DNA of 64,000 nt, taken from NCBI GenBank assembly GCA_004431415.1, contig QPMI01000136.1:62001-126000 (forward strand), in the 5' to 3' direction. This DNA is from Cyanophora paradoxa CCMP329 (lineage: Eukaryota; Plantae; Glaucophyta). The position numbers and the translations under genes are program-made. The notes below the pieces were generated by a model. It saw nothing but the letters and a program-made list of their open reading frames with translations, made no database searches and was not told the DNA's origin. The number at the start of each line of letters is the position of its first letter. Positions within the stretch are counted from its first letter, which is position 1. This document shows positions 10,654 through 46,300 of this stretch, piece by piece.

Positions 10654-10658
10654 AAAGC

Positions 10659-10820
10659 TGTCAGGCACTGTCAGGCACTGTCAGGCACTGTCAGGCACCT
10701 TTCTATTTAACTTTTATAAGTTCATGGTTTCATTGTTTTTGCGAACACTGACTTGCAAAAAGTGACAGAGTTTCTTAATGTTAGCTGAATCAGCTGCCTG
10801 ACAATCGAATTCTGCCTGAG
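10659..10820. repeat. Iteron-like module 2: 4 perfect tandem TGTCAGGCAC, AT-rich spacer, 2 inverted copies
   Basis: 10-mers at 10659, 10669, 10679, 10689; TGCCTGA at 10796 and 10813. Confidence 0.9.
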
Positions 10821-10862
10821 GATTTAAAACAAATACATTCTTATAATAGTAAACAGTACAAA

Positions 10863-11180: not shown

Positions 11181-11214
11181 AATATTTATTGAGAGTAGGA
11201 ACAAGTTAGGAACT

Positions 11215-14460: not shown

Positions 14461-14463
14461 GAG

Positions 14464-15849: not shown

Positions 15850-15898
15850 TTAATAGCATCTAATAAGCATCTCCCCAAGATTCCCCCTATTATTAAAG

Positions 15899-16449
15899 TG
15901 GACTCAAGGTTGACTCATATTAATCGATAGTATATGGATTTTGTTACGAATTCAATGCAAGGGTTGACTAAGTGGGTTGAGTTGACTCAAATTTCACAGG
16001 AAATAACAATGAATCAGAGTATAAAATGCATTATTTGAATCAACTACACCAACTAACACTGAGAAAGTAGGTTATAACATATAGTATTACCATATATGGT
16101 TTGTCAGGCACTATAATATAGTTGTCAGGCACTAATATAGTATGTCAGGCATTGTCAGGCACCTTTTTAGAAAACTTTTATAAAATTGAAATTTCATTGT
16201 TAATCCAAACAATGACTTAGCCAAAATAAAATACTTTATGAAAATCGATAGATTTAATGCCTGACAAATAAATGCTGCCTGAAAGATTTAACACCAACTA
16301 ACACTGAGATTTTCACAATATATGAGGTCCTTACTGAATATGGTTTGTGTCACAGGTGTCACAGGTCTATCCCGTGGATTTTAAAAATCAATTTCTCACT
16401 AGGACTTTCCTTGGGATTGACCTGTGACACCTGTGACACCTGTGACACC
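15899..16449. repeat. Subterminal repeat region with TTGACTCA, TGTCAGGCA (module 3) and GTGTCACAG iteron-like modules
   Basis: TGTCAGGCA at 16102, 16123, 16143, 16153, inverted at 16258 and 16276; GTGTCACAG x2 at 16347, inverted x3 at 16421-16449; 19-bp direct repeat at 16046 and 16291. Confidence 0.85.
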
Positions 16450-16691
16450 CAAATTCCTAAGGGTCCCCCCTTAGACTCAACAAAACAATGATAAAATCAT
16501 ATAAGTTTCATGTATAATTACGATTGAATTCAATAAGAGATCGATTTGTTAATATAAACAAATGAATCATTTATGGATCTTAATCGAGTTTAGCGATATA
16601 TTTCCGATTAAATGAATTAAATTTAATTAAATTTAATCGAGAAAGTACATGAATATAATATCGATTAAATCAATTAACTTTTAGACCAATC

Positions 16692-16974
16692 ACACATAGT
16701 AAAATGCGGAGTTTTAACCAGAGGCAAGATCTAATTGAGATTCAGTTATATTATTCGGAAATATATACAGATTATCGATAGACTCAGTAAGACTAATCGG
16801 AAAATAAGAGAAATTTACGATAAAATATCGAAAAGAATACAAAATAATCGAAATAAATGAATATTCGATAAGATATACACAGATTATCGATTGATTGAAA
16901 TAGAATATACGAGATATATCAACAAAATCAATTAAGATAAGCCGAGGGTTAAAACTCCGCATTTTACTATGTGT
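16692..16974. repeat. Perfect 28-bp inverted repeat forming the right end of element A
   Basis: ACACATAGTAAAATGCGGAGTTTTAACC (16692-16719) and its reverse complement (16947-16974); the GC shift starts right after. Confidence 0.92.
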
Positions 16975-19900
16975 CGCGGGACGGCGAGCTCTGCCCCCAC
17001 GGCCGGGACCACGATCGCGTGGAGACGAGCATGTGGGTGGCGGAGAGCGGCATCCCCGGCGTCCTCGCCGCGACGGCGCACTGCTACTCGCTCCGCTGCG
17101 CCGGCGAGCCGCTCCTGGGCGCCCTCGCGTGGAGCGACCCGGACGCGCTCGGCGACGCGGCGTGCCGCGCCCTGGCCGACGAGGCGCTCCTGCGGCTCCA
17201 CGGGACCGTCGCCGGCATCGCCGACCGCGCCCTGGGGAGCGCGGCGATACGGCGCCAGCAGCGGGCCGATCGGGAGGCCGCGGCCGCCGAGGGGGCCGAT
17301 CCGGACCAGGCCCCTCGGCCCCCGCCCCGCCCGCCCCGCCGACGCTGCCGTCGCGCCCCGACGGGCGGCTCCCGCCCGTGCGCGTCTCCGCGCACGTCGA
17401 GGGCCGCACCTACTGCGTCTGAACCCCCTGCTGGAGCTGCGGGCACCGCAAGGGGCGGGTCTTCATCGACGAGACGTGCGCGGGCGGGACGGGCCGCTGC
17501 AACCGGCGCGGCAGCGTCCGAGTCCGCGCGTGCGCCGCGGCGGCCTGCCAGGGCCGCTGGGCGCACGCGCCCGCGGACCTCGGCGAGGACGACGCGACGG
17601 AGCTGCGGCGCGCCGAGGACGAGGTGGAGATGTTCTCCTCGGGATCTTCCCCGAGCAGAGCGGGACGATGGCGGCCGGCACGTTTGGGGCGACGGAGCGC
17701 AACCCGCACTGGTCGCTCCTCTCGGGGGCCTCGGTCGGCTACCTCGACGCGCTCGGCGCCTGGCTGCGCACCCTCGGCACCGGCGAGGCGCTCCCGGACG
17801 ACGGGGCCCGAGCGGCGCGCCCGCCCCGCGGGGGCCGGGCTCCCGGCTCCCACTTTCTCGAGGACGGCGCCGTCGGCGGGCCGGCGGCCCGCATGCGCGG
17901 CCTGCTGCCGGACCTCGAGACGTGGCGCGGCGCCCTGCGCCTCCCGGACCTCGCGCGGCCGCTGGCGATCCCGCCGGACTTTGATCCCGTCGCCCAACGC
18001 TGGATCGACATCGACGAGCCGGCGGGGGCGGGGGCCCGGCGCTTCTGCAGCCCGGCCCCCATCCTCGCGCGCCTGGACGGCGGGAGGAAGACGATCTTTG
18101 TGCGGGCAGAGACCGGGTGCGGCAAGACGGAGACGTGCGTGGGGAGCCGCGAGGGCTCGGCGGGGGCGGGGCCCCGGGGGATCCTGCAGGCGGTGCTGGA
18201 CGACCCGGCGCTCATGGGGCTCCCCAGCGTCCCCGGCGCGCCGCCCCGCGTCCTCTACGTGACGGTGGGGCGCGTCCAGCCCGACATCCTCGTCAAGGAC
18301 CCCCGCTTCGCGGCCCTCACCTACCCCTCGGCGTCGGGCGAGCGCGTGCCGGTCGCCTGGACCGTCTACAAGGAGGCCCGCTCCGAGGAGCTCGCCGAGG
18401 CGGCGTTTGTCATGTGCACCGTGCAGAGCGGCCGCCGGCTCGAGGGCGACTTTGACGTCGTCATCGTCGACGAGGGGGCGCGGGCCCTCACGACCCTCAC
18501 GACGGGCGGGCCGTTCAAGGGGCCCGAGCACCACGCGCAGACGGTCGCCTGGTTCGACAGGGCGCTGGAGGCGCTGGCGCTCGTGATCGTTGCCGACGCC
18601 GACCTGCTGGACGAGGACGCCGCCCTCTACGCCGCGCGCCGCCCGGGGACGGACGTCGTCTCGTACCTCAAGCGCGGCAGCAACGACGCGCGCCTGCGCT
18701 GGACGGCCATCGACATCCGCTACGCCGCCGCCGTGATCGCCGCCAAGCTCCTCGACGGCGAGGTCGGCTACATCGCCGCCTCGACGCGACGGGCGCACTG
18801 GGAGCTCAAGTCCAACGTCAACCGGCACCTCCGGCTCCGCGGGCAGCGCTGCGAGTTTGTCTACGCCGACGCCGACAAGCGGGCGCGGGACACAATGACG
18901 GACCCGGACTACGTCTCCTCCACCCTCTGCTACGCCGTCAACTACGCGATGCCGCAGGGGAGCGACTTTTCCAGGGGGCGGCCGGCGACGTTTGTCGCCT
19001 ACATCGAAGAGGGGCGCACCGCCGACATCAACGCCGGCTTCCAGCTCGTCCGCCGCCGCCGGCACGTCGTCGGGCCGGACGCCCTGTACTTTTGCCACTT
19101 TCCCAAGTCGGCCCCCCTCCTGGACCGGGTGGGGAGGCCCCTGCACGCTCCCGTCGACTGGCAGGCGATCCACCGCGACCTGACGGACTCGCTCCGCGCC
19201 TGGAACGAGCGGCTCCCCGAGGAGAAGCGCGTGGCGCTCAAGGACCACTACCTGCGCGTGCGGGCGATCCGGACGGCGATCCGAAACGCCACGCACGCGT
19301 GCCCCATGCTGGCGTTTCACCTCAAGCTCCAGTCGCTCGGGAACGAGGGCCTCTACATTCTCCCCCTCCCGCAGCCCCCCGAGGGGTCCAAGAAGGGCTC
19401 GGCCCGCGGCCGCAACCGGCGCGCCCCGGCCGCCCAGGCGCAGGCCCCGGCCCCCGCCGCGCCGTCCGGGGCGCCGTCCGCCGGCGGCCTGCCCTGGATG
19501 CCAGAGGCGTACTCCAAGGAGGCGGGGGTCCTGGCGGCCGAGGTCGAGGCGCGCGAGCGGCTCCTCCCCATCGTCGCCGCCCCGCGCCTCTCCGACTATG
19601 CGTGCGCCAAGGCGATCTGCTCGAGCATGGAGCACGGTACCTCCAAGCTGGAGCTCTCCGACGCCGCCCGGCGCGCCTGGAAGCGCGCGAGGGCCGCCGC
19701 GCGCTTCGGGCTCCACCCCGAGCACGTGGGGCACGCCGAGGTCCGCCTCTCGGAGCAGAGCCCGCCGGTGGAGATCTTCCGCCTCTCCAAGCGGTTCGCC
19801 CTCGACACCCTCGAGTACCTCGCGACCGGCGCGGGGCCCGAGGAGGAGCCGGCGACCCTCCTCCCCGACCACAGCGAGCGCCGGCGTCCCTTTGAGAGCG

Positions 19901-21394
19901 CCCTGCGGCTCTTTGAGCTGCTCGGCGTGCGGATCCCGCCCGGCGGCGTCGGCGGCGGCGGCGCGGCGCTGGCGGCGGGCCTGCGGTACCTCCTCTGGAC
20001 GACGTGGGAGGGGCCCGAGGCGTGGGGGGCGGCGCGCCTGCGCGGACTCGCCGAGGGGCTGGAGAACGGGGGCGCCTTCACGGAGGGGGCCCTCGGGCGC
20101 CTCTTTGCGGACGTCTGCCGCACGGCGTGGGACCGGTTCGCGGCGCCGCTCTCGGAGGAGGTCGCGGGGCGCGAGACGGACCTCCGCTGGGCGTGCGCCG
20201 AGCGCTGGCGGCTCCCGTGCCTCCGGCCGGAGCGGCGCGCCAAGGGGAGCGCCCGCCCGCCCTCGAGGACTGCGCGCGGCGCCTCCTGCATGACCTCGTC
20301 GTCCACGCGGCGGCGCAGCTGGGCCTCGGCGTCCTCATCGCGGCGACCGAGGCGCGGCGGGTGGTGCGGGGCGGACAGCGCACCACCGTCAAGCGCACGC
20401 GCTACTGTTTCGATCCGGAGACGGTCCTCCTGGGCCTGCGCCTCTACGGGCGCGACCGGGACGGGCGGGCCGGCATGCCGCCCAACGCCGCCCTCGCGGC
20501 GCTCCTCGCGGCGGCCGTGCGCTCCCACCAGATCCTGCTCGCGCGGGACCCGGCGTCCAAGCTCGTGACCTCGAGCGAGTGCGGCGGCGGTGGCGGCGGC
20601 GCGCGCAGCGGCCCCGGCGCGGCGCCGGCGGAGGAGGAGGAGGCCTCCCCGCGCCCCGGGGCGGGGGCGTGGCGCGTCGGCAGGCACCTGCGCGCCGGCG
20701 TGCACTCGGAGGTCTTCTTCTCGGAGGCGGCGCGGGCGGTCTTTGGCGCCGACGCCGCCCGCTGCTGGAGGGAGCCCGAGGAGGAGGACCAGGTCGGGTC
20801 GCCCTACGCGGAGCTGCTGGCGCGGGCCGCCGCCAGCGAGGCGACCGAGGCGCTCGTCCCGATCGCGCCGCCCTCGCCGGCGGCGGCGCGGACCCGACGG
20901 CCGCCGCGGTCTGCGCGCGGGACCTGGCGCGCGCCGCGCTGGAGATGCGGGCGGACGAGGCCAAGGGGAGCCTCGGATTCCCCCCCGCCGAGGAGCTGCC
21001 GGCCCTCCCGATCGAGGACGTGACCTGGACGCTCGGTCGCCTCGCCTCGGCCGCCGGCCCGCCCGGCGAGCGCGCCGTTGCGCTGTGCCCCATCGTCGAG
21101 GGCCGCGGGGGCCCGGACCCGTGCATCGGCTTTGCGTACACGGCGATTTTCGCGCAGAAGGAGCTCCTCCCGTCGTCCCGAATCGACCTGGTGCGCTCCG
21201 GGACCGGCGGCTCGGGCGTCTCCCTCTTTGTCGAGGACGCCGCTCGGCGCCTCCCCGCGGAGCTCGCCCGCCCGCGGCTCGAGCGGGCGTCTCGCTCTGC
21301 GGGGCGGAAGATGCTCCTCTTCGTACCCACCTCGACCTTTGCGTTTTTTGGCGTCCCCCTGCCCGGCCTTCCCCCCCCGGCCCCCCTCGCGTGA
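16975..21394 (+). pseudogene. 5'-truncated primase Zn-finger plus UL9-like SF2 origin-binding helicase, several frameshifts
   Basis: CPHGRDH...AHCYSLRC resembles the PrimPol/UL52 Zn finger; FVRAETGCGKT (Walker A), VMCTVQS, DVVIVDEG (Walker B), IVADADL, GSDF, FQLVRRRR; coding continues through the frames of ORFs 20004 and 20579. Confidence 0.75.
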
Positions 21395-21748
21395 CTGAAG
21401 GAGCAGCAATTGCGATTGAGAGGCTTGCATGCGCGTGCTTTTTTTGCGGGGCAACTCGGCATCGCCGTCGCGCCTTGCAATTGCTCCTGCACCGCCCTCT
21501 GCCCCTCTGCGCCCCCCGCGTTTCGAATTTTTTCGCGCAGATCCGGACCCGTCCCCGGCACGTGTACCCCCGTCCCACCTTGGCCTCGCTGCAACCGGAC
21601 CCGGTGCGTGTACCGTTTCCGTACTGCGTGAATGCGGCATTCCCAAATTTGGATTTTTTTTCCCAGCGGACCGATTCACCTGAAAGGGGATCGGGGGGCA
21701 CAAAAAGCGGCCCGCCGCCGCCGGCGCGCCTCAGTCTGCGCCCTCGAA

Positions 21749-23696
21749 ATGGATCCCAACTCGGCCGCCTCCGCCGCCGGCGGCGCGACCGCGGCGGCCC
21801 CTGCCGCTGCAGCAGCAGCCGCCGCCGACGACGCGACCGCGACCGCCGCCGCGGCGGCCAGCGGTCTCGGTCGCGCGCTCCGCTTCGGCCCGAGGACCTT
21901 TGAGAATCCGGCAAAGATCGTACCGTCCATCGAGAAGACGAGCAGGGGCAGGGCGATCGGGATCAACTCGGTGCGCAGGGCCCTCGGCAGGGTCGCACGC
22001 CTCCCGTCCGGCCTCCCCGAGATCATCTTCGCCCACCTGCCGCGAGCGAGGCGCCTCGCCATGCTGCGCACCTGCCAGCAGACGCGCACCTTTGCGCTCG
22101 GCGCGTCCTCGCGCGGCTGGTTTGACGCCCTCTTCGTCGACGACCCGATCGCCCTCATCTCGGGCCCGGCGCGGCCGGCGGCGCCCCGCGCGGCTCCTCG
22201 CCGGGCGCGGCGCGGGCGCAGAGGTGCCCCTCCCCGCAGACTGCGGTCCAAACTGCCTGGACTTTGTACCGGCGTTTTCGCACGGCGACGGCGAGGGCCG
22301 CTGGATGGGCCTGCTCTACCCGCGTGGATGGTTGGGACCCCGCACGCCCACGGTCCTGCGCTACGGGCCCGGCGGGCGCGCCGGCGCCCTGGCAATCCCC
22401 CCGCAAATGGACTTTGCGTTCACCAGCTGCGGGCGCGATTCCTTTGCCATCGGCCGCGACGGCGCCGCCGTGCTCGGCGGCGCGCGCAGCTGGCTGGTCT
22501 GGTCTCCCGACGGCCGCGCGGAGATCGTGGACGTGGGGGCGGTCGTGGGGGGCGTGGTGGCGTGCCGCCCCTCCCCCGACGCCTCTCGCGTCGCCGTCTG
22601 CAGCATCGTCGATCGCCGCATCCTCGTCCGCTTCGTCCGCGTGGGCGACTCTGCCGAGGCGGCCGCCGCGGCGCGCCCCATCGACGTGGGGCCCCTGGAC
22701 TCGGACGCGGCGCGCGGGCGCCTCTCGGAGGATCTCACCTTTCTCGACGGGAGCCACGTCGACGGCGGCGGCCTCCACGCCGGCGCCAACTACCCTTGGG
22801 AGGCCGTGGACGCGGCGCACGCCGATGTCGGCGTGACGTGGAACGCGCCCTGCACCGCGGTCCTGGTCCGCGCCAAGGCATCGACCTGCGCCGTCGACGT
22901 CGAGGGGGACGAAGACGAGTACGCGTTCGAGGCCCACCTGGTGCGGCTCGCGTCGGTGACCCTGGAGGGCCGCTCGCGCGCGTGCTGGTGGTGCACGATT
23001 GGCCAGGCTCCCGTGGACGCCTTTGCCGTCGGCCTCGGGGAGAACTGGCTCCTCCACACCACCCGGCCCGTCGAGGACATCGGCGCGGCGTCCATGTACG
23101 TCTTCTACCTCGACCCTCCCACCGTACGCCGCGGCGACGTCGACATACGGTGCACCATGATCGAGCTGCGGATGCCCTGCCAGGGGTGGTTCTGGGATTC
23201 CATCGTGCCCCTCGGCAACTGGTGCTTCATCTACCAGGCCTGGGGCCAGTTTATGCAGGGCACCGACGGGCACCGCCGCGGGATCAGCCGCCCGTTTCTC
23301 GTCACCATCGAGCGCCGCTCGTCGCACGTCGACTATTTCGAGCTGCGCGGGGCCGCTGGACTGGATCGCGAGCCCAGCGACGACGAGATCGCGGGCCGCC
23401 TGCGGCCCCTGGGCGCCGTGGGGCTCCACGGACTCGCGGTGCTGGGGAGGGGCCAGGGCGGCTGCGCGGTGCACGACGTCGACGTCGTGCGCTACGTGCC
23501 GTGGCCGGGGACGGGCGACCTCGTCCGCCTGGGCGGGAGCGAGACCTCTACGCAGTTTCTGCCCAAGGGGCTGGTGCAGCTGCGGTTCGACACCGCGCCG
23601 TCGACGAGCGACTGGATCGAGGCGCGCTACTCGGGCCCCCACGGCATCGAGCACGGCTGCACGCTCACCTTTGACCCCGAGGTCGACGCGGCGTAG
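21749..23696 (+). CDS. F-box-like protein with beta-rich C-terminus; putative GC-AG intron 22164-22239
   Basis: ARLPSGLPEIIFAHLPRARRLAMLRTCQ F-box-like motif; removing the intron joins ORF 21632 to ORF 21900 in frame. Confidence 0.55.
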
Positions 23697-24039
23697 AGCG
23701 TACACGCCGACGCGCGCCCCGCGCGATCGGAGGGCGGCTCGGCGCGCGCCCCCTTTTCCCCCGCCGCAAAATTAAATGCCCCAATTAGCCGCCGGCCCCG
23801 CGATCGGCCGCTAGCCAAGTACCGTGTCGGTACGCCTATGTGTGCACGCTTCCGATCGTGTGATTACGGGTGCTGCGCGTGCGTACGCGTGCGCGTGGGG
23901 CGCGCCCCAAGCGCGCCGTCGCCTCGCCGAGGGCGTGCGGGACTGCGGGATTCCTCCCCCTGCACGAGAATCTCTCGATTGCTCGGTAGCCCGCGGGGGA
24001 GGGGAGGCGGGAGGGGGGTAGGGGGTGGGGTAGGATGGG

Positions 24040-24780
24040 GGTAGAGGGTTGCTGGAAACGAGAAGGGGTCGGCGGGGCGGGATGGGGGTAGCAAAATGTA
24101 CGCTCCGGCACCTCGCCTGCGCAACGGCCGCAATCTGGTCGCGGGGGGGGAGGGGGTAAGATAGGGGTACAGGGTTGCTGGAACGAGAAGGGGTCGAGGG
24201 GAATAGGAGGACACACGGTTCGGCTCCCGGCAACGTATATTCGATGCGGCCGAGGGCCTGCGGACTCGTTTTCGGTGTGCCGACGGCGCGGCGGGCGGCG
24301 AAAGCGGGCCGTACCCCTGCCGTACTCTCTCCCCCTCCTCCCCCTCCGCCCGTAGATCGTGGAGCGGCTGCATTCTGGTCGGTGTAAGGGAGGGGGAGGT
24401 GCAGCGCCTCCAGGGCAGGGAAGGAAAAAAAGCAGGGCACCGGTTCGACTCTCGATGGGGAAGGGTAGCTCACTCCCGACCAGAATGCGGCCGATCCCGG
24501 TATTAAGGTGGCGGGTCGGGCGTGCGGAGCGGTACCCCCGAGCCTCCCCCTCCCCCCACCCGCCCTCCGCTCGCACCCCCTCCCCACCCTTTGCCGCCTG
24601 TAGATCGTGCAGCGGCCGCATCCCGGCCGCGGCGAGTCGGGTGGGGCGAATGGGGGTACGGGCCGCAGAGTAGGGGCACCGGCTCGACTCTCGGCAGAGC
24701 CCTTCCCGACCCGAATGCGGCCGGCTCCGCCTCCAAGGGCGCCGGGGCAGGCGGGGCGGACGGCGCGTACCCCTGCCCTC
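24040..24780. repeat. Degenerate duplications in a G-run-rich intergenic region
   Basis: GGGTTGCTGGAA(A)CGAGAAGGGGTCG at ~24046 and ~24172; GTAGATCGTG, GGGCACCGGYTCGACTCTCG and GAATGCGGCCG recur about 240 bp apart. Confidence 0.6.
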
Positions 24781-25010
24781 CTGCGCGGCCACGGCGCGGT
24801 CAGAGGGGGCGAGGGGCGCCGGCAGGGGGGTACCGCAGGCCGGGAGAGCGCGCGCACCGAGCCGGCTCGCCGCCCGCCGCCTAGCCTGCTCGGAGCCGCC
24901 CCCGAGCCGTACCCCTGCGCGCGGGACCGAGTCGCACGAAACCGTGCCCGGCAAACGTATAAGAGACGGCGCCGCCGCCGCCGGGGGCCACTTGCGAACC
25001 TGCGAAAAGA

Positions 25011-25702
25011 ATGTGCCGAGACGGGCGCCTGGTCGCAACGCGCGACGGGGACATGGTGTGCGATGCCTGCGGCGAGGCCGAGGCGGCCGCCGCGTCGCTG
25101 GGGCCGCGCGGGACGCCGAAGAGGCCCCGCAGGCCGGCGAGGCCGCGCCGGCGTCGCCCCGGGGCGGCCCGCGGCCCACGCATATGGCGCGCGTGGAGAG
25201 GCTGCTGGAGAGCGCGGCGCTGGAGCTGGGCCTCGCCGACGCGGCGGTCGACGAGGCGCGACGGCTGCTCGCGGACCGCACGCTCCGAGTCGGGCGGAAG
25301 AACGAGATCTCCGTCACCGGGGCCCTCTACTGGGCGGCCGCCGCCGCCGGCGCCCCGCGCACCGTCGAAGAGGCGCTCGGCTGGCACCCCGCCCTGCGCA
25401 CGCGCCGCGCGGCGCTCGTCAGGATGGTCCGCGCGATCCACCGCCGCCGCGGCGTGGGGCGCGTACCCCGCGCGCCCGACTATGTCGACACGCTCGCCCA
25501 TCGCGTGGGGCTGGGCGGGGCCGGCGCGCGGGCGGCGCGCGAGTACGCCGAGCGGCACCGGGACTCGGGGCGGAGCCCGATCGTCATCGCCGCGGCTGCG
25601 CTGGTGGTCGAGGGCGGCGCGTCGGTGCTGGACGCCGCGCGGGCCGCCGGCATCACGGCCGCCGGCGTCAAGCAGTGCATCAAGGCGCTCGCCGCCTCCT
25701 AG
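25011..25702 (+). CDS. TFIIB: Minimal TFIIB-like transcription factor, frameshift at ~25110-25150
   Basis: Zn ribbon DGDMVCDACG (ORF 25011); cyclin repeats with GRK...GALYWA...PRT, DYVDTLAHRVGL and SGRSPIVIAAAAL (ORF 24944). Confidence 0.8.
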
Positions 25703-26510
25703 GAGGATAGAGAGAGAGATAGGTTGAGCGTTGTGTTGCAACTGAGAGCCTGCGGCGGCGCGCGGCGTGTCATTCGTGCATGCGGGAATGAAAGCCTGGC
25801 GCCGGCGGGTCGCACCGGGCACGGCAAGGCAGAGGAATCGTCCAGCCGCACCGCGCGCGCTCGGCTGGAGCGGCCCGGGCGTGCCGCGCGGCGCGATCCG
25901 ACCGCGGCCGCGCCGAGCCCTCGCCTCTGGGACGCGCCCCGGGGGCTTTGGGTGCATCAAACGTAGTTTGAGACGCTCTCCGGTCGATCGGGCCCGAGGG
26001 GCGGCCGGCCGGGTCGCGCGGGGCCCCGCACGGCGGTCGAGGACTCGTTGAGAACTTGACGAGTCCTGGGGAGCAAGCGTGGGCGGGGTACGGGGCGCTT
26101 TCGTTCTCACCCGCCCCTCGGTAAGAGACGAGCCGGACTTGGCAAAATCCTCGGCGGGGCGAGTTCCCCGAGTCGCCCGAGCGGCGGCGCGCGGCGGCGG
26201 GCTCAAGCTTGCCTAGACGCTCGATTTGCATTGCAGCATCCGAAAGGCTACGTGCTATGCGCGTGGGGGGCGAACAGAGAGCGGACCGGCCGCCGGCCGG
26301 GGCCTGCAATCGGCACCCGGGTTCTGCTTGCGGGTCCCAGATCGGCTTGGTTCGCCTCTGATGGCGTCTTCCAACGTTTTCTGATTCCATGACGCGCAGG
26401 CTAGAGCACCCGCGGCCCGCCAGCCGAGGAGTTGACCGCGGCTGCGGCGGGCGCGTGCAGCGCCGTTTCCTTCCTTCTTCGTTGCGCTTCCGCTTGCTCG
26501 GGTGCAGCTC

Positions 26511-27134
26511 CTACGACCCGTCCGAGACCGGGCTCTCGCCTCCCGCGTCGGCGCCCTCGGGGTTGACGTGGACGACGATCTGGGTGCCGCCGCCGGCGCT
26601 CCACTCGGCGGCGAGCTTCTTCATGGCTTCGACGCGCTTCGATGCGGACCCGGTGCGCCCCTTGAGCGCCTGCTCGTAACCCTGGGCCAGGCTGCGGTTC
26701 GGAAACGGCGTGGCGACGGCGACGAGCCGCCAGGGTCCGCGGCTCTTGGTGAACGAGCCGCGGATGGTGCCGCGCGAGTGCTCCTTGTACCTCCGCGCGA
26801 GGCTCGCCGTCTCGCCGCAGTAGAACATCTGCCCGTTGTGCAAGAGGTACACGACGTGCTGCTTCTCAAACTGGTGGTGGAACGCGCGGGCCTTGCCGCC
26901 GCCGCCGCCGCCGCCGCCGCCCGGCGATGCCTTTGCTGCCGCGGCGTCGGCGCCGGCCCCAGGACCGGCGCTCCCGCGCTCCCCGTCGACGCTGCCCTTG
27001 TCCGCATCCGAGTCCTCGTGCGCCCCGTCGCCTTCGCTCCCTCGAGGCTGCTGCCGCGGCTCGCCTTCTTTGACCGCATCCGCAGGAGGCGCGCCCTGCA
27101 TCTCTGCGTCGGCCTCCATGCTGCCAACCCCCAT
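26511..27134 (-). CDS. GIY-YIG endonuclease (Slx1/UPF0213-like)
   Basis: VVYLL...FYCGET..LARRYKEH...FTKSRGPWRLV...AQGYEQALK. Confidence 0.88.
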   Translation of the reverse strand: MGVGSMEADAEMQGAPPADAVKEGEPRQQPRGSEGDGAHEDSDADKGSVDGERGSAGPGAGADAAAAKASPGGGGGGGGGKARAFHHQFEKQHVVYLLHNGQMFYCGETASLARRYKEHSRGTIRGSFTKSRGPWRLVAVATPFPNRSLAQGYEQALKGRTGSASKRVEAMKKLAAEWSAGGGTQIVVHVNPEGADAGGESPVSDGS

Positions 27135-27219
27135 CCGCCGCGCGGCCCCGGCGCGAGGACGGGAGAGCGTCTGGTGCGACCGTCCCCCGTGGCGGCGCGC
27201 GGCAGGCTCGCTTTATGCG

Positions 27220-30200
27220 TTACGCAGATCTCGGCGCGGGCACAAAGGCGTGGTGGGACGGCGGCGGCGGCTGCGGATGCGGCGTGGTGCTGAGCCTGGC
27301 GCGCTTCGGCGGGGCCCCGCCGGGAGACTCGACGCGCGCGAGGGGCGGAGGGCGCCGGCCGGAGGGCACGCGGCGAGAGGCGGCAGCGCGGGGGCGGCGG
27401 GGGCGCGGCGTGTCCGGCCGCCCGGGTCCGTCCATTCCCTCGCGGGGCCCGCCGTCGCCGCCCGCGCTTCCTTTTGCGGGTTCGCCGGCCGGCCTCCGAG
27501 GCGAGGCTGCGGGTCGCTTCGCCTCCCCGCGCCCCGTCAGCCGGACGGCGGCCGCGCCTTGGGCGGCCTCCCGCGCCGCCTCACGGGCGGGCGCCCCGCC
27601 CGCCCCGCCGCGCGACGACGAGGAGGAAGAGGCCGGCGGCGGCGAGGACGCCGGCCGCGCAAAGCCCAGGAGCTCCAGCACCCGCTCGGCGCCGGTTCGG
27701 ATCTCGACGGTGCCGTTGCGGCCCTCGTACTCGACGGGGAAGAGGGCGCTCACGCCCGTCCACTCGCGAGGTCCGCCCTCCTGGCTCGCCGTCCACGCCC
27801 CGCCGAACCGCTTCAGCAGGACGAAGCGGGACTCGAACTCGCCGCTCGGCAGGTCGATCGTCTGGACGAGGCGCGCGTACACCACGTTGGGCAGCGGGCT
27901 CGCCGCGTGCGTCGCCAGCGCCGCCACCACCTGCCCCGCCGCGTACGGCGAGGCCGACCGCCAGCGCAGGTGGTAGAGGGCGGCGGCGGCCCCGCCGCGG
28001 GCACGGCGACGGGGCGGGAACGGCGCCGCCGCGGCCCGGCCCGAGGCCCCGCCGGCGGCTGAGGCCCCGCCGGCGGCCGCCGCGGATGAGCCCCGGGAGC
28101 AGTAGCTCGCGTGGTGCTTCGCCCCGGCCGCGTTGTTGAACGCCTCGCGGTGCGTCGGGGCGGTAAAGGCGGGAGGCGCGGGGCGCGGGGCGGGCGCGGT
28201 CTCACCCGGTCGCAGGGCTCGCAGTAGCGCTGCTCGGCGATCGCCAGCGCCCGCTCGACGGCATAGTCGGCGTCCCAGGGCCGCTGAGGCCCCCCCGCGC
28301 TGCCGGTCCGGCGCCGCTTGGCCTCGAGCCGCCCCCGTCCCCCTCGTCCCCTTCTTCCTCCTCCTCCTCCTCTTCCTCTTCCTCCTCTTCCTCTTCCTCG
28401 TCACTCAAGTCGAACGAGCTGGAGCTCCCGCCCTTGCGCGCCGGCTCGGGGCTCGTCGACGGCGTCGGCGCCTGCGTCGACGGCGTCGGCGCCTGCGTCG
28501 CCGGCACCGCCTCGCCCTCGTCTCCGGCCTCTCTCTCTTTCTTTTTCTTTTCCTCCTTCTCCCCCTGGTGTTCCTCGTCGCCGTCCTCCCTCGCCGCCTT
28601 GCCGCCGCGGCTCCCGCCGCCCGCCGCCCGCCCCTTGCTCCGGCCGGCCCCTCGGCGCGCAGCGCGGGGCGCCGCCGGACGGGGCGCGGGGTCGGCCGCC
28701 GGCCCCTCCAGGAGCGGCGGCTCGGGCCCGTCGGGGCTCTCCCGCGCGCGGCGCCTCTCCTCCACGTGCTTCAGCGCCAGCTGCTCGAGGTACGCCACCG
28801 CCGAGGCCGCCGCGCGCGCGCGGGCCGAGTAGTCGTAATTCTGCGTCGCAGTGACGACGCTGTGCCCCAGCAGCTTGGCTGCGCGGGGGCGCGGTGACGG
28901 CGGGCGCGGCGGCGGGCGCGGCGGCGGGCGCGGAGGCGGGCGCGGGAGCGGGGTGCGGCGCACCCGTCCCCTCGACGACGGCGGCGGCGGTGTCGCCGGA
29001 GATGCGGTTCGCGGCGGCCTCGTCCCGCACGTGCGTCGTGATGATGGCGCGGATGGCCTGCGCCGTCACCGGCACGCCCGTGTACTTTTCCGTCACCTGC
29101 GGTGCGTGAGCCTCTCCCCCCTCAGCCCGCCCGCCCCCCCGCGCGCCTTTTTCACAAAGTTGCTCCAGCCGGCGTCGGAGAGGAGCGTTCCCGTCGGGCC
29201 GGTGAAGAGCCAGCCCTCGTCGGCGGCGCCCGTCGTCGGCGGGAAGAGGAGGCGGCGGTAGCGCTCGACGTACAAGGTGAGCGGCTCCTGGACAAACCCG
29301 GGGATCGGAAAGGTCATCGCGCCGGCAGTCTTGGCCGTCTTGGACGAGAGGACCGGCTCGGCGCCCCCGACGTCGATTCTCATCTTTGTGAGCGCGATCG
29401 CCCACGCGCCCTGGTCCCTTCGGAGCGTGTGACCGATCCTGCGCAGGGCGCGCGGTGGCCATGGGGGCGGGGCGGGAGGGGCGGCGGAGGGGGGGTACAG
29501 CACCTGAGGCGGCGGACGATGCCGACGCGCGAGGGCGTCGAGACGAGGAGGGAGAGGAGGAGCCCCTCGCGGAGGGCGAGGGCCTTGTCGTACTCGAGCG
29601 GCGCCCGCTCCGCCGCCTCCAGCGCGTCCAGCCGCGCCGAGAGGAGCGTCTCAAAGGGCACCCAGTTCGGTCCGCGCTCGCGCCACTTGACCCCCTCCCG
29701 CTTCTCCTTTCTCAGCTGGGCGAGCAGGTTGCGGAGGCCGCGGGCGTGGGGCCCCTCGGAGCCCGCCGCCGCGCCCGACGTGCGCGCGTGGACAAAGGCG
29801 TGGGCCTGGAGCGCCGCCTGCGTGTACCCCGCCAAGGTGGCCGCCTGCACCTTGCGCTCCCCGCGGAGAAACGTGAGGAACCGCATCCACAGGTCGATGA
29901 AATCGACGCGGGCGCCGGAGAAGAGCTCGAGCGTCGGGGCGCCGTCGATCTTCTCGCGGAGGGCGCAGTACCCCAGGAAGCGCAGCAGCGTCGTCCGCTC
30001 GTTGGCCAGCGTCGAGGAGCGCTCGACGGCGGCGCCGGGGCGGTCGGGGTTGAGGGCGCGGGTACGCCACTCTTCGTACGCGGCGAGCTGCGCCTTGAGC
30101 TCCCGCGACTGATCCTCCTCGCGCAGGCCGTACGGGGCGGCGCGCTCGGCCGACGGCTCCTCGGGGGCCTCGGCGTCGGAGCCCGCGTCGCCCGGCGCCG

Positions 30201-32090
30201 GCAGCGGCGGCGGCCGCGGCGAGCTCGAGGGGGAGGACGAGGGGTCGGCGCCGGGATCGCTCCCCTCGCTGCCGGAGCTTGTCGAGCTCTCCCCGAGGTC
30301 GACGGCTCGAATCCCCACGGCGGCGCCCGGCGGAGCCTGGCGGGACGCTGCGGCGGCGGCGGCGGCGGCAGCGGCGGCAGCGGCGGCGCGGGGCCGCTCC
30401 TCGGCGGGGAGGACCACGCGCTCGGGGTCCGGCAGGGCGTCGGCGTCAAAGAGCGTGATCGACGGGTCGAGGATCATGCTCTCCAGCATCGACCGGTACG
30501 CCTGGCGCTTCTCCACGATAAACTTGGCGTTGTCCTTGGCGACGGCGTCTGACATGGGGCCCCCCGGGCGGTAGAACATCAGCTCGCCGTGTGCCAGCTC
30601 GTCCGACCACGAGAAGCCCGTCGCCGCCTCCAGCGTCGCGCCCTCGGCGAACCAGAGGATCCCTGCCGGGGGCCCGTCAAGGGGGCGCTGCGGGAATGGG
30701 CGCCGAGGGAGAGGCGCGCACACGGCCCGCACTGGTACCCGTCCACCTGGAGCCGCCCGCCGCTCGTCTCGTCCACGAACTGGTGCGCGGGAAACGCCGC
30801 CTTGGCCGCGTAGACGAGCGACGGGTCGCAGGGGTCGCCGAGCGAGTCCCAGTACCGAGTCTTCGCCCCGCCGAGCACGACGAGGGTCCAGTGGCCGCCG
30901 CTCGCCGAGCGCTTCTCGGCCCCGCGGCGCACGAGGCTCGTCGAGACGGGGCAGATGACGGTGCCGCCCCTCGCCACGAGCGACAGCGCGCGCCGCTTAC
31001 GGCGCTCCTCGCTCGCAGCCGCGTACCGGCGGAGGACCGAGGCGAGGATGTCGACGCTCATCGGGTAGAGGGCCCGCACGCGGCCGTTGTTGGCCTTGCG
31101 CAGGATGAGGGTGAGCACGTTGGCGATGTGCGTGTCCGTGAGCCACTCGCGCGCACCAAAGATCGGGACGCGGCGCGCAGGCGGGACGGGCGCGGGAACG
31201 GCGGCGGCGGCGGCGACGGGGTCGGCGCCCTCGAGGACGAGCCGCTGGCGCTTGAAGTCGGCGAGGAGGCTCGCGTCGCGCCCCGGTAGGTCCTTTAGGA
31301 ACATCTCCACGCCGAGCGCGCTGATGAAGCCCCAGGTGCGGGCAAAGCCGCGCGAGGCCTCGCCCTCGACCTCGGAGCCCAGGCCGGCGTACCGCGTCAG
31401 CGTCTGCGTGACGAGGCCGAAGCGCTCGCGGCCGATGCTCAGCGTCGTCACGTTCCAGCGGTGCGGCCCGTCCCGCGCGAGGTCCGGGAGGCGCCTCTCG
31501 ATCTCGCGCCGCACGCAGTTTGTGTCGCGGGAGGAGCCGTAGAGGGCGTCGGCGAGCGAGGCCATCGGCACCCAGAGCTGCAGGTCCGGCACCTCGATCC
31601 GCTTGGCGCGCAGCGCGTACATCCGCTTGCCGCCGACGCGTACGACGTGCAGGTCGAGGCGCGCGAGGGTGCGGGGCCGGCGGCGCTCGTTGGCGGCGTA
31701 GAACGAGGCGGCGGCGGCGCGCTTCCGCGGCTCGTCCGTCCCCTCCCACGCCTCGGCGATCACCTCCAGCACGTAGCGCATCGCCACCATCCGCGGCGGC
31801 GACTCGGGCGTGCACTCGCGCCGGCGGACGGCGCCCAGCGCCTCGAGCAGCAGGATGGCGTTCTCGTCGGGCAGCGGCCGCGTCGGGACGCCGTAGCGGA
31901 CGGTGAGGAGGTCCTCGGCCTCGGCCTCGGGCCCGTCGGCGTCGGGGCGCGGCTCGCCGAGGAGGCGCGCCAGCTGGGCCGAGCACGCGGCGGGGCCCGC
32001 CGTCGTCGGGAGGACGACGAGGCGCTCCGGCCCCCAGGGCCCGGCATACTCGACGAGCTCGTAGGCGTCGTGTACCGTCGGGAAGGACAT
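27220..32090 (-). CDS. Spliced fusion: Ulp1/C48 cysteine protease - tyrosine recombinase - acidic tract - C2HC Zn finger
   Basis: Protease WLTD, GHWTL, YWDSL, QVDGYQCG; YR PSR, SKT, QAIR, LLGHS, QNY. Introns 30663-30721, 29439-29503, 29097-29146 (GC) and 28879-28963 each restore the frame. The 3' end needs one frameshift (~28290) and an intron (~28145-28205). Confidence 0.8.
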
Positions 32091-33934
32091 CACGGCACGT
32101 CTGCGGTTCCGAGTTGCGGCCGGCCTCGAGCCTGAGGTGCACACCCCTTCCCTTCCCCCCTGGCGCGGGGCAGGGAGGGGGCCTGCGGGCCCGGAGTGAG
32201 ACGTGGGTGTGCAGGTGAGTACGGCAGGAGGCTCGGGAGGAGGGGCGGGACGACGGATGCCCCAGCATTGAGGCGGGTGGATGCATTTATGCGTGTTCCA
32301 TTCTGATGTGGCGCGCGCTCGCCCGCGCGCGCTCGCCCCACCTTTTGTACAGGCTGAGCCGACGTAGAGTGGGGGAGTGGGGGGCATGGGGGTACGGGTC
32401 CGATGTCGAGCCCTAGGCCTCAGTCCTCCTGATCCACGTAGGCTTTCTAATGGGCCGCATTCTGACCAGCGTGCAACTAAACGCCGCTATACCGTTGTGA
32501 AAATCAGAGTTCAACTTTGTCCTCTCCGAAAACCGCGTGTCCGGGCCTATAGCTAACCATAATGTACATGTGGCTTCTTCGAATTCGGCCGCGGGGCCGG
32601 GGCTACGCCGTGTGACGGGTTGATGGGGGTTCGCGGGCCGGCGCCGCGGCCCGGCGGTATACGTAGCCGGAAGAGCGACGAGCTTAAGGAGCCGCTGAGC
32701 ACGGCGCGTGGGAATCGGATTTTAAGATTGCAAAGTTCGGAGCCGCGGCGCGGCCCCGGGCGCCGGCCGGCACCATGCAAGACAAGGCATAGGGGTATAC
32801 GCACAACGGATCAACGCATACGCTAGTACTAGTATAGTACGTATACTCAGCTGCAGTATATCGTATACGTAGTACGTAAACTTGCGCCTTCGAAGTCAAG
32901 TGCAAGCCTTGAAGGCGCCGCCAGGTCGCACGGCAGGCCGGCACTGCGGCATCTAGCCTAGGCCTCCGCTAGCCTAGTAGTGTTACTGCATTAGGCGCGC
33001 GCCGCTCACTCGAGCTCGACGTTCAACGGTTGTTCGACAAGTTCTAGTAACGAATCGTCACACACACGGCGTCGGCCGCGCGGCGTCTACGGCCAAGCTC
33101 AAGGTGCGGTCAATTGCAAGATGCCAATGCTAGCTATAGGAGGCATCTGTACATGTAGCTATAACCTCGCGCGTATGGTTAGCAGCACGAGCTAGAGCTT
33201 CCAGCGAGTCCATGGCCAGCCCGCGGCCGCGGCCGCGTGCCGGCGCGGCATCCGCAAGTTCCATCATGATCAGTCGCCCACCGGGCATGGCCAATTGCAC
33301 CGCAACAACGCTATAGCTATGAAGAGGGCCCAACTTGGCAATACTATGATATATGAGCATCCGCGTGTACGGCAGCCGCAGACGGATTGCCCTTGGGCAT
33401 GGCCATGTTAACGTTATGCGCATGCATGCATATGTGCCGACGTCGATGCCGACGTCGCCGGCGCGGGCCAGCTGCAGCCCGGCGGGTCAGCGCTAGCATG
33501 CGTATGCATATGTCTGACCCATAAGCGGCACGCCTGCGCAGCTTCCGGCGGGCGTGGTGTTTGAACGCGCACGTGCACGTGCAAGCAATATTCATGGATG
33601 ACGACGCAGGTGCATCTCGCCTGGCCCGGTGCCACTGGGCCAGCAGCCGCAGCTGCTTCGAACTCGCAGCGCCCGGATGTGTCGATGTCGCCGGCGCCGT
33701 GCACGCCGTGTGTGTGACATGGCCCTGTGCGCAGACCGGGAGGCGCCGGCGCCGGCGCCGGCGCACGCGCGATCAACACGAGCTGCAGGCTCGAGCTCGC
33801 CGGCTCCGGGGCCGCACGTACACGCAGCAGAGGCCGAGGCCGCAGCCGCAGGAGGATCGCAAGATGCAGTCGCCGTGCGCACGCGATCGCGAGCGCCCCC
33901 ACGCGAGCTCCCGTCCCAGCCCCGCACTCACCGG

Positions 33935-43387: not shown

Positions 43388-46300
43388 ATGCCCCGCCAAA
43401 CTAATCGCCTTATAAAAGAGAAAAAGGACGAAATATTAGGCTTGTTAGGTAGTCTTTTAGTCACTGGCGAGATCAACGAAGCCGAATACGATCGGAGGGC
43501 GGCGATCTTAGATCGAAAACCCCGCTTAGCTAACCTTGCAAATATTGCCGACGAGCTCTATGATCGCCTGGAAAATGTGGAGCGCTTCTATACCGAAGGG
43601 CGGCGCTTAGCCGTCATAGAACCCGATGAGGACGACGGTTTCGCAATGAATAAAGCATACGCCTGGTATAGCTATAAGGCGGATGAACAGATAATCTTAG
43701 ATCCGGTGGAATTTCTCACTACCATTGCTGCAAATCTGCCTGGGCGGCTGAAAGAGAGGCTGGACGAGCTGAAAGCTATTAAGGTGCGCCTTACATTCAT
43801 CTGCCGATACGTAAAAGTGAGTGATCCTAACGTTTTTATCACCAAACACATTTACAGCGATTATTTCGTAATCACAAGGTCGCGCAATATTCTCACTGAG
43901 TTAGTGGGTGTAGCTCAGCAAATGAATGAACAGATGATACAGGTCGACAGCTACCGGCTCAGTAAATTAGATAAGCTACATGTCGCCGTTTTGTCATATG
44001 CGCCGGTGGGCGGGTGCTACATTGAGACCCCCGAATGGATTGGATTAAAGCGAGCCACAGTAAATATTAAGAATATCGATGGTCACGACTGTTTTAATTA
44101 CGCTATCCTCGCATGGCTGCACAGAAACGACATAAACAGACACAAACGTAATGATCCGTTCCAATATAGGCGGTGGATGACTGAACTCGACTTTTCAGGC
44201 ATTAATTTCCCGGTGGCTTGCGATGCTGCATTAATAGATCGGTTCGAGGACAATAATCCCGAGCTGTCAATTAATATATATGGCGCCGACAATGCGACCC
44301 AAACCTTTTACCCACTGCACATGTCAAGTAATCCGCGTCGTAAATCAAAGGTAAACCTGCTGCTGATCGAGGACGCAAACGGACAGGGTCACTATATTAC
44401 GATTATGTCACTGAGCCGCCTCTTAAAGACCACCTTTGATAAAGCAAACGACGGGCGCATTTTCTACTGCGAAACCTGTTTGTCCCGGTTTAGATCACAG
44501 GAGAAACTCGATAGCCACACCGACTCTAATCGCTGTATCGATTGGAGAATGAGTAAAGGTAAATGCCCGGAACCCGGAAGCTTTATTACTTTCGGACTGC
44601 AACACCTAAGGAAAATGGTGTGGCTGCCCACTGTCTGTTACTGCAAGGTAGAGATGGAGTCGGTGCCGGTTCCTGATGAGCCAAATCGAACCAAGCGAGA
44701 GGTAAAGTCAGTGGCACTTAATGTAGTTATGGGCTCGCATGTTGAAAATCACGAATTCGAGGGCGTGGATCCACTGGGACAGATGTTTACCACGTTAGGG
44801 GAACTGTGCCGCGAGATGCTTAATACCCTATTTACTAATACACCTATGATTCCGCTCACAGAGGCGCAAAAGCAAGCCTATAAAATCACCAAACACTGCT
44901 ATATATGCAATCAGCGGTTTACCCACGAAAACTTCCCTGTGCGCGATCACTGTCACCAAAGCGGCGATTATATAGGGAAAGCTTGCCGAAAGTGCAATTT
45001 ACATAGGAGGATCTCAAAGCAAACGAAAGTAGCTGTGGTAATTGATCGGATGGACGAGTGCGGGCATGCTATATTCAGGAAAATCGCACAGCAAGACGAT
45101 AAGCTGCGGGTCGAGATCCTAAGTAAGAATTTCGACGAGTATCTCTCTTTACAGTGGGGACTTTACAAGTTTATAGACGCCTCGAATTTCATGGATTTTC
45201 AGGCGTCCGATGTTAATGATCTCATGGTAAAATTCGGTAAATTCAGTATGCTCGCCCATGAGCAATACGGACTGGATCCCACTCATTATGTGAGCGCACC
45301 GGGACTATCGTGGGACGCGATGTTAAAGCATACGAGGGTCGCGATTGAACAGATCAGCGATGCGGATCAATACGAATTTATTGAGCGGGCAATTAGGGGC
45401 GGCTTTGCGACCATGCCCACACGATATGCCGAGGCTAATAGCGAGAATAAACATATAGTGCTATTGGATGCGAATAATCTATATGGCTATGCGCTCAGTC
45501 AGCCTTTACCGGTCGGGGACTATCGCTGGGACGACACAAGCACAGCGTTTACCGAGGTTGTAGGGCGGAGTGCATTTATAGAGGTCGACCTTGCCTATCC
45601 GGACTATTTAAAGGCTGACCATCGCGATTTCCCGCTGATCGTGAGTAAAGAGGTAATTACTGCGGACATGCTCGGCAAATATCAGCGTGGGCTTTTGGAG
45701 ATTAGCGGCGAGAAGCTAAGTAAAGATCCGAAGCTGATCGCCTCGTTTACTCCGAAATATAATTACGTGGTCTCTCAGCCGATGCTGCTCTATATGGTAA
45801 AAAAGGGGATCGTAGTTACTAAGATTCACCGCGTGCTCTCGTTTGCAACCGCTGCATTTATGAAGCCCTATATAGATCTAAACACGAAACTGCGCAAGGA
45901 AGCCCGGAATAAATTCGAGAGCGACTTCTTTAAATTGATGAATAATGCTATTTACGGTAAATGTCTGGAATCGTGTCGCGGGCGCTCCGTGGTAAAGATC
46001 GCGAATAGCACGAAGCTGTTTAAGAAATATGCGGCGAGCCCACTGGTAAAAGCGACGAATGTATTAAACGAGACCGCGGTCGCCTTTGAAATGTATAGTA
46101 AACACGTAAAACTCGATAAACCGGTTGCGATTGGCGCTTATGTGCTGGATGCCGCGAAGCTGCATAATTATAGCTTCTTTTACGACGTGATCCGACCGAC
46201 TTTCTCGCAAGCTCAGCTGCTGTTCCACGATACCGACTCGTTCTGTCTGTATATAGAGACCGCGGATCTGGAAGCGGGCATGCGAGCGATCAGCCCTCAT

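Follow-up and report, generated by a model that had tools for sequence, protein, structure and literature searches.

Does a gene that joins a Ulp1-type cysteine protease to a tyrosine recombinase in a single chain serve the cell that carries it, or a mobile element? The question is raised by a minus-strand gene at 27220-32090 in a stretch of 64,000 nucleotides (nt) from the glaucophyte Cyanophora paradoxa CCMP329 (contig QPMI01000136.1 of assembly GCA_004431415.1, positions 62,001 to 126,000; this whole stretch is here called the window, and all coordinates count from its first letter). The gene encodes both enzymes in one reading frame and belongs to a multi-copy, diverged family; we consider it probable that the region is the single large gene of one copy of a Crypton-like tyrosine-recombinase DNA transposon in the glaucophyte genome.

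Exon structure of the gene

In DNA of 75% guanine plus cytosine (GC), long open frames occur by chance in all six frames, so open frames alone are no proof of a gene. The exon model is borne out by codon-position composition, by the tiling of a family profile and by tblastn with paralogues. In every exon, the GC content is 0.90-0.98 at third (GC3) and 0.54-0.67 at second codon positions (GC2) in precisely the proposed frame, and the phase jumps at each intron; inside the introns, which are mostly C-rich, this analysis finds no codon periodicity. The five introns lie on the minus strand where a sequence-only reading had placed them (strand read directly, borders checked by script); it had joined the pieces in frame across introns of 59, 65, 50 and 85 nt and a further junction, and these joins hold. 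From the start codon onwards, the parts of the gene are as follows (labels of the type P0003 denote family proteins):

30722-32090, minus strand: exon 1 (GC3 0.97, GC2 0.54), with ATG at 32090, the N-terminal domain and most of the C48-like protease
30663-30721, minus strand: intron 1, 59 nt, GT-AG (GTGCGC..GGCAG), C-rich, inside the protease domain after the catalytic Cys
29504-30662, minus strand: exon 2 (GC3 0.95, one open frame), with the protease end (WILWFAEG..), an Ala/Ser/Pro linker and the helical N-terminal domain of the recombinase
29439-29503, minus strand: intron 2, 65 nt, GT-AG (GTGCTG..CGCAG)
29147-29438, minus strand: exon 3 (GC3 0.90), recombinase catalytic domain, beta-hairpin region; tblastn matches at 29440-29147
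29097-29146, minus strand: intron 3, 50 nt, GC-AG (GCGCGC..CGCAG), G-rich
28964-29096, minus strand: exon 4, second catalytic Arg in QAIR, profile positions 301-338
28879-28963, minus strand: intron 4, 85 nt, GT-AG (GTGCGC..CGCAG), 92% GC
28329-28878, minus strand: exon 5 (GC3 0.90), with the His of LLGHS, the catalytic Tyr, then a low-complexity basic and then acidic (poly-Glu) linker
28329-28351, minus strand: first apparent frame change, one base seemingly missing, in G runs
28206-28328, minus strand: half-finger coding stretch (GC3 0.95), with a basic motif resembling a nuclear localization signal (EAKRRRTG) and the first half of the finger; conserved in P0003 and P0006
28144-28205, minus strand: intron 5, 62 nt, GT-AG (GTGAGA..GCGAG), splitting the zinc finger
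27537-28143, minus strand: last exon (GC3 0.95 over 28143-27601), with the second half of the finger, C-terminal domain, tail and TGA at 27539-27537; aligned with P0003 and P0006
near 27582, minus strand: second apparent frame change, one extra base
27220-27536, minus strand: remainder of the open frame drawn by the sequence-only reading, GC 0.84/0.79/0.85 at codon positions 1/2/3, no codon periodicity, no paralogue counterpart

The four GT-AG introns share near-identical ends (GTGCGC, GTGCTG or GTGAGA at the donor; GCAG or GCGAG at the acceptor).

The profile of the recombinase was built from 63 relatives, obtained by a profile search of 1.84 billion representative proteins with the N-terminal part of the recombinase in exon 2 as query; a second version consists of 59 non-Cyanophora metagenome proteins, which are unspliced open reading frame (ORF) calls. 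The exons tile the profile without gap or overlap (exon 2 at 3-216, exon 3 at 218-299, exon 4 at 301-338, exon 5 at 338-393), and the tiling survives when the profile of the 59 unspliced relatives is used alone. Exon 2 scores 158-206 bits against the family profile, and the exon ORFs of the window are its sole matches among 1811 six-frame ORFs from the window and 20 fetched loci; the E-values of the tiling come from tiny databases, and the argument rests on bit scores and the tiling itself.

Cyanophora paralogue proteins, aligned to the window by tblastn, show breaks and frame shifts at the same exon borders. Their matches terminate at 30723/30726, the end of exon 1, whose final base opens a split Trp codon (t|gg), and the start codon at 32090 is backed by paralogue N-termini (MFSVVKDAYE.., MYFQTVHDAYE..) that align from it. 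The junction peptides (GYQCGP|W|ILW, RRL(R)|IGH, FVKK|VTEK, EGT(A)|KLLGHS and YCEPCDR|AFNN) rebuild motifs just as had been claimed for them: QCG(P/I)W(I/V)LW, RRL(R/Q)(I/V)G..LRRD, FVK(K/R)VTEK and V(E/D)GTAKLLGHS are contiguous in the spliced paralogue models. At intron 1, CGPW(I/V)LW is contiguous in the paralogue models, in the chlamydial protease SnCE1 and in unspliced metagenome ORFs; at intron 2, RRLR|IGHTLRRD agrees with P0004, P0005 and P0006; at intron 4, V(E/D)GTAKLLGHS is unbroken in P0003, as is the whole zinc finger in P0006 (RWCPECRRIFGTPRGISRHRC). An alternative GT donor for intron 3, 9 nt upstream, was rejected: it would remove VKK, where the paralogues (FVK(K/R)VTEK, FVRRVMLK, FAKQAMSR) are ungapped.

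The 3' third departs from a simple open frame. The half-finger exon (..WDADYAVERALAIAEQRYCEPCDR) is out of frame with the AKLLGHS exon, the change at 28329-28351 separating ..EEGDEGDGGG, in the frame of exon 5, from LEAKRRRTG..WDADY..RYCEPCDR, in the next frame. A three-frame comparison with P0003 (..SEDDGEDGSGASDGSEEAKRRRTGADRPRAWDADY..) marks both the acidic tract and EAKRRRTG..WDADY as coding, so that a one-base correction is needed within the G runs 28351-28329. An extra intron of 62 nt at 28404-28343 was judged weaker than this one-base indel, as it removes the acidic tract that P0003 keeps, and among all GT/GC-AG candidates listed between exon 5 and the finger exon no convincing intron is found. 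Of the span 27220-32090 originally proposed, the start at 32090 thus stands and the far end does not: the coding region most likely runs from 32090 to a stop at 27537 and changes frame twice in its 3' third, by one base each time; 27220-27536 is probably 3' untranslated sequence rather than coding. Both changes lie in G runs: either this copy has recently been damaged, or the assembly contains homopolymer errors.

Protease, recombinase and finger in one chain

The full protein has about 1,300-1,400 amino acids and is encoded in six or seven pieces, with five short introns between them. Its order is: N-terminal domain, CE-clan/C48 protease, disordered linker, two-domain recombinase, acidic/basic linker with the motif resembling a nuclear localization signal, zinc finger with C2HC ligands, C-terminal domain, and AT-hook-like tail. 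What is said of the protein as a whole derives from single exons and from natural paralogues, which are predicted gene models. The residues discussed below are encoded at:

30893-30891, minus strand: protease catalytic His (GGHW)
30848-30846, minus strand: protease catalytic Asp (YWDSLG)
30749-30747, minus strand: protease oxyanion Gln (RLQVDG)
30731-30729, minus strand: protease catalytic Cys (GYQCGP)
29529-29527, minus strand: recombinase Arg I (TPSRVG)
29341-29339, minus strand: recombinase beta-hairpin Lys (SSKTAK)
29060-29058, minus strand: Gln at the His position of HxxR (QAIR)
29051-29049, minus strand: recombinase Arg II (QAIR)
28864-28862, minus strand: recombinase His (LLGHS)
28837-28835, minus strand: recombinase nucleophile Tyr (TQNYDY)
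28223-28221 and 28214-28212, minus strand: zinc-finger Cys codons, first half
28116-28111 (His) and 28101-28099 (terminal Cys), minus strand: zinc finger, second half

As far as the DNA shows, protease and recombinase form one gene. The protease domain is interrupted by intron 1 two residues past the catalytic Cys; from the helix that follows this Cys, exon 2 keeps a single frame and an uninterrupted codon periodicity through the linker and into the recombinase, up to Arg I. The fusion of a Ulp1 protease to a tyrosine recombinase, as first read from the letters, is borne out by this intron position and this continuous frame.

A protease profile made of the exon 1 part and seven Cyanophora paralogues, run against PDB sequences, matches SnCE1/ChlaDub2 (9qte) at E=1.7e-7, followed by the ULP domain 7fiu (1.1e-3), XopD (7e-3), SENP1 (0.16) and Ulp1 (1.5). 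The alignment, GGHW..Y(W/Y)DS..LQ(V/P)DGYQCGPW(I/A)L(W/Y)F, takes in His, Asp, oxyanion Gln and catalytic Cys, the last being identified by the Cys-to-Ala entry 9qtf; the proposal that H, D and C with Q form a C48/Ulp1 active site is upheld by the match to 9qte, in which all four are aligned. Folded by itself, exon 1 gives a poor AlphaFold model (mean predicted local distance difference test, pLDDT, 48; 57-87 in the protease part); nearly all top Foldseek matches of this weak model are CE-clan proteases (NopD at 4.6e-4, OtDUB, Den1, SENP1, SnCE1, Ulp1), which counts as support only. By profile match and aligned residues, the region is a CE-clan/C48 cysteine protease of Ulp1/ChlaDUB type with an intact H-D-Q-C site. 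Pfam PF02902 (C48) gives no match on the exon or on the paralogues, which places the family outside Pfam's model. Substrate specificity is unreadable from the sequence because the nearest solved relatives are bacterial deubiquitinase, deneddylase and SUMO proteases; inspection of the linker for a self-processing site revealed no conserved Gly-Gly.

The motif chain HW..YYDS..LQxDGYQCGPW is nearest to CE-clan effectors of Chlamydiae: Simkania SnCE1/ChlaDub2 and proteins of Parachlamydiaceae and Chlamydiia metagenome-assembled genomes (L005:2617-3621 and L008:218-1522). Chlamydial genes have been reported in Archaeplastida. The closeness of the protease to chlamydial sequences may be called suggestive; L005 and L008 were picked for having this motif and therefore do not demonstrate a transfer. 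Pattern scans for the motif in bacterial and archaeal genomes and in metagenomes returned CE-clan proteases, including those of the two chlamydial genomes, none with a recombinase beside it; nor did proteases of the DGYQCGPW type in metagenomes and chlamydial metagenome-assembled genomes ever adjoin this recombinase.

Downstream of the protease comes a tyrosine recombinase of two domains, which has the residues R, K, (Q)xxR, H and Y. The family profile matches XerA (4a8e) in the PDB at E=2.3e-4, then 5hxy (0.016) and XerH (0.096); Arg II aligns with PHQLRHSF and the His..Tyr box with LGHSNLSTTQIY of XerA, where the family reads lpPkllRasF at Arg II, and the R and K are near-invariant among the 63 relatives. 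An R-K-HxxR-H-Y site with QAIR in place of HxxR had been proposed, and R, K, R, H and Y are all in place, with Gln for the His. A confident AlphaFold model of residues 340-775 of the natural paralogue P0006 (pLDDT 81, predicted template modelling score 0.68) matches Cre (3crx_A) over 350 columns and both domains at E=1.2e-5, with template modelling (TM) scores of 0.47/0.60, followed by XerA, XerH, lambda Int and Tn1549 Int. Searches of single exons with Pfam and NCBIfam yield no C48 or integrase match, only a faint XerC N-terminal hint on exon 2 (E=0.07), and those of the paralogues are as uninformative; Phage_integrase PF00589 is found on none of the exons and on 1 of 71 relatives (2.3e-5), and phmmer with exons 1 and 2 finds no match in the PDB. 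Profiles built from the family match XerA and SnCE1/ChlaDub2, though Pfam is blank.

Removal of intron 5 yields a finger of the form C-x2-C-x3-F-x8-H-x3-C, the classical spacing with a terminal Cys (C2HC). It is followed in the last exon by a small conserved C-terminal domain (LYHLRWRS..VEYEGRNGTVEIRTG..LELLG) and by a paralogue-like, AT-hook-like tail, RRRGRPPK, in the frame that ends at TGA 27539-27537. At the other end lies a conserved N-terminal domain of about 290 residues (32090-31221). Both the N-terminal domain (profile against PDB) and the small C-terminal domain are conserved among the paralogues and matched nothing.

Family, genomic setting and rival explanations

At least ten gene models of Cyanophora paradoxa type, on different contigs, belong to the family (eight confirmed in EukProt EP00741, with P0010 and P0011 beside them), and are 26-91% identical. 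They are the proteins closest to the gene, and they speak against Cafeteria burkhardae as host, which the pattern of a GC-rich host with AT-rich virophages had suggested. Several of the models have the same architecture, among them P0003 (1301 amino acids) and P0006 (975 amino acids), which have protease, recombinase, finger and C-terminal domain in the same order; P0002 and P0004 have an identical N-terminus on two contigs. Truncation, frame shifts or mergers with host genes (WD40, EF-hand) mark several models. In P0007, which is a confirmed Cyanophora model, and in P0011, fragments of the family are joined to host genes of this WD40 or EF-hand kind; the two chimeras suggest that the published proteome contains the element family unmasked and wrongly annotated. 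Word-index protein searches found one paralogue each, low-complexity words having probably swamped the candidates.

Beyond Cyanophora, 158 representative clusters (50% identity) were found, nearly all on metagenome contigs with eukaryote-like neighbours. The remote recombinase relatives on two such contigs (L001, of 8.5 kilobases, kb, and L002, of 20 kb) stand near ERCC4, BET, chromo, PHD and DNA-methylase genes; the remote metagenome relatives are without the protease motif, and viral contig collections hold no relatives. One of the relatives, with 966 amino acids (the P0053 cluster), is found repeatedly, in different samples and on many contigs of 8.4-9.2 kb. Within the data reached, the protease-recombinase fusion is confined to Cyanophora.

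The window itself is a compositional mosaic: positions 1-16974 have 40% GC, jumping at 16974/16975 to 75% GC until about 32400, and the recombinase gene forms the right end of this GC-rich block, on the minus strand. A scan of the window found neither transfer RNA genes nor Rfam families. Its other features are:

1-16974: polinton/virophage-like element, 40% GC
30-1586: patatin-like and F5/8-type-C ORF, part of the 40% GC element
5023-5754: packaging-ATPase-like ORF, part of the 40% GC element
8260-10653: primase-helicase-like ORF, part of the 40% GC element
11215-14460: protein-primed polymerase-like ORF, part of the 40% GC element
14464-15849: integrase-like ORF, part of the 40% GC element
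16692-16738 and 16928-16974: 47-nt inverted repeat pair, where the 40% GC element terminates at a razor-sharp GC step
16975-23725, plus strand: large multi-exon gene with codon periodicity; weak superfamily 1 (SF1) helicase (AAA_11) hint only
24944-25699, plus strand: TFIIB-repeat gene with codon periodicity
26511-27134, minus strand: small ORF with a GIY-YIG nuclease domain (Pfam 4.8e-8) and clear codon periodicity
43388-46648, plus strand: second protein-primed family-B DNA polymerase (DNA_pol_B_2 6e-12) with an Endonuclease VII-like insert, in a stretch of 47-52% GC, probably another integrated polinton-like virus
50645-55195, minus strand: reverse-transcriptase ORF of 1517 amino acids (RVT_1 7e-19), a retroelement, 18 kb away from the recombinase gene and without link to it

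The copy thus sits among two polinton/virophage-like elements and a retroelement. A dispersed, decaying family of many lineages looks like a DNA transposon, and it is against this reading that host ownership has to be weighed, in which a former recombinase-protease would have become immobile and taken up work for the cell, such as a part in chromatin or DNA repair. The host-like codon usage, GC content and short introns, which resemble those of the neighbours, would fit such a domesticated gene family, as would the TFIIB-like and GIY-YIG genes close by and the family-wide loss of the canonical HxxR His, which is also seen in domesticated Crypton derivatives (DUF3504; PMC3212892). Yet R, K, R, H and Y are all retained, unlike in DUF3504; the family comprises at least ten diverged copies on different contigs, with near-identical pairs and truncated or chimeric models among them; and the present copy carries frame changes and is embedded among other mobile elements, all of which makes domestication unlikely. 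The surroundings bear equally on whether the gene is one of several in a larger composite element, or in the whole 15-kb GC-rich island 16975-32400 with the GIY-YIG and helicase-like genes. The sharp composition borders at 16974/16975 and near 32400, the position of the GIY-YIG ORF on the same strand about 400 nt past the likely stop, and the SF1-helicase hint in the big plus-strand gene speak for it, but the left border simply marks where the 40% GC virus-like element, which has a terminal inverted repeat of its own, stops, the intervening TFIIB-like gene resembles an ordinary host gene, and in tblastn the paralogue gene models share nothing with the rest of the island, the plus-strand genes at 16975-23725 and 24944-25699 having no counterpart at the Cyanophora paralogue loci. 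We regard this explanation, too, as unlikely, and slightly more so.

Very improbable, in our estimate, is an origin as the leftover of a DIRS-, Ngaro- or PAT-type retrotransposon, a retroelement with a tyrosine recombinase, whose reverse transcriptase is gone. Retroelements with such a recombinase abound in protists and, in Cafeteria, insert close to endogenous virophages (PMC8547959), and a reverse-transcriptase ORF is present on the same strand of the window; it is, however, separated from the gene by another virus-like element. Reverse transcriptase, RNase H and methyltransferase are absent from the gene, from 10 kb downstream, from the tested ORFs of 9 kb upstream and from all Cyanophora family models tested; split direct or inverted terminal repeats were not found around the gene, where the search for terminal or split direct repeats gave only low-complexity GC tracts; and five spliceosomal introns are normally missing from retro-copied elements. 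Less improbable than these, though still doubtful, is the view that the 158-cluster group of protist recombinases is a superfamily of its own, barely detected by Pfam, rather than a Crypton branch. Within it, a CE-clan protease, nearest among solved structures to chlamydial effectors, would have been acquired in Cyanophora and joined to the recombinase because transposition, or escape from host silencing, requires the removal of a ubiquitin-like modifier.

Several points weigh against the Crypton-like single-gene transposon that we prefer. The window contains one DNA copy only, and the multi-copy status is established at the protein level, from paralogues that are predicted gene models; the 3' third of this copy seems to change frame twice, by one base each time. 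The GIY-YIG gene immediately downstream means that the element may exceed one gene. The His of HxxR is not conserved (Gln here, Lys or Arg in P0005/P0006, which read KTMR and RTMR, and P..LR in the family consensus), Pfam detects neither the C48 nor the integrase domain on the exons, and membership in Crypton proper is no more than putative.

In a Crypton-like transposon of this kind, in which protease and recombinase are intact and the 3' third carries the frame changes, the recombinase would excise and insert the element by site-specific strand exchange via a 3'-phosphotyrosine intermediate, as proposed for Cryptons, while the finger, the AT-hook and perhaps the N-terminal domain would bind DNA or chromatin. 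The ubiquitin-like modifier that the protease would strip off (SUMO, ubiquitin or NEDD8) may sit on the recombinase or, where the element transposes, on host proteins of chromatin or repair; self-processing, as in viral CE-clan proteases, is possible. The proposal of the sequence-only reading, a deSUMOylase that counters SUMO-dependent silencing, is conjecture, which the analysis neither favours nor contradicts.

Relation to known systems

The sequence-only reading knew of no pairing of Ulp1 with a tyrosine recombinase, but such a pairing is on record: oomycete Cryptons that encode a C48 (Ulp1) peptidase besides the recombinase, such as CryptonF-2_PS of Phytophthora sojae, were described by Kojima and Jurka in 2011 (PMC3212892), and in some CryptonS of oomycetes and a diatom the C48 peptidase is a separate protein (PMC3212892). 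The Cyanophora gene resembles these C48 Cryptons in having a tyrosine recombinase as sole recombinase, no reverse transcriptase and a C48 peptidase in the same element, as well as an extra conserved C-terminal region and a tolerance of introns (PMC3212892); Cryptons have no long terminal repeats and at most short direct repeats at defined ends, and around the gene the repeat search gave none beyond low-complexity GC tracts. It differs in its host, a glaucophyte and not a stramenopile, fungus or animal; in the union of protease and recombinase in one frame, where CryptonS has a separate peptidase; in the C2HC finger and AT-hook-like tail that stand in place of GCR1_C; and in the replacement of the His of R-H-R-Y. 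New here are thus the glaucophyte host, a demonstrable single-chain fusion, a finger and AT-hook tail replacing GCR1_C, the QxxR box, and a recombinase family nearly invisible to Pfam.

Outside the tyrosine recombinases, Bao et al. (2010) described Ulp1 fused to Ginger1 integrases and encoded by Mutator elements, and proposed a role of the ubiquitin-like pathway in transposition (PMC2836005). Ginger1 and the Mutator-like KI-MULE elements share with the Cyanophora gene a transposition enzyme fused to or beside a Ulp1/C48 domain, sometimes a chromatin-reading or zinc-finger module, and few introns, GC-AG ones included (PMC2836005); their enzyme is, however, a DDE integrase or transposase, and their Ulp1 is recognised by PF02902, which the Cyanophora domain is not. 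The best sequence match of the protease, to SnCE1 and ChlaDUB1-2 (9qte, 6oam, 6gzu), extends to the chain GxHW..YYDS..LQxDGYQCGPWxLxF and the H-D-Q-C set, whereas those are secreted bacterial deubiquitinase, deneddylase and SUMO proteases without a recombinase; the identity to bacterial CE-clan effectors is about 25-30% over about 75 residues, which does not imply common descent beyond the clan. With Cre and XerA (3crx, 5hxy, 4a8e), the recombinase shares a helical core-binding and a catalytic domain, with Arg I, Lys, Arg II, His and Tyr in the same order; it is 11-15% identical to them, about 100 residues longer, with a bigger helical N-terminal domain and Gln for the His of HxxR, and it sits within a multidomain eukaryotic protein of 1,300 residues.

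Because neither domain is detected by the standard profiles, protist genomes probably contain members of this family without annotation or with a wrong one, and exon-by-exon profile tiling offers a practical route to their recognition. With Ginger/Mutator elements and their DDE enzymes, and the oomycete Cryptons and their tyrosine recombinases, the glaucophyte gene makes a third independent case of a transposition enzyme with a Ulp1-type protease. It strengthens the idea that the removal of ubiquitin-like modifiers is a recurrent need of DNA transposition, and, as a natural single-chain protease-recombinase, provides an expressible object on which this idea can be tested.

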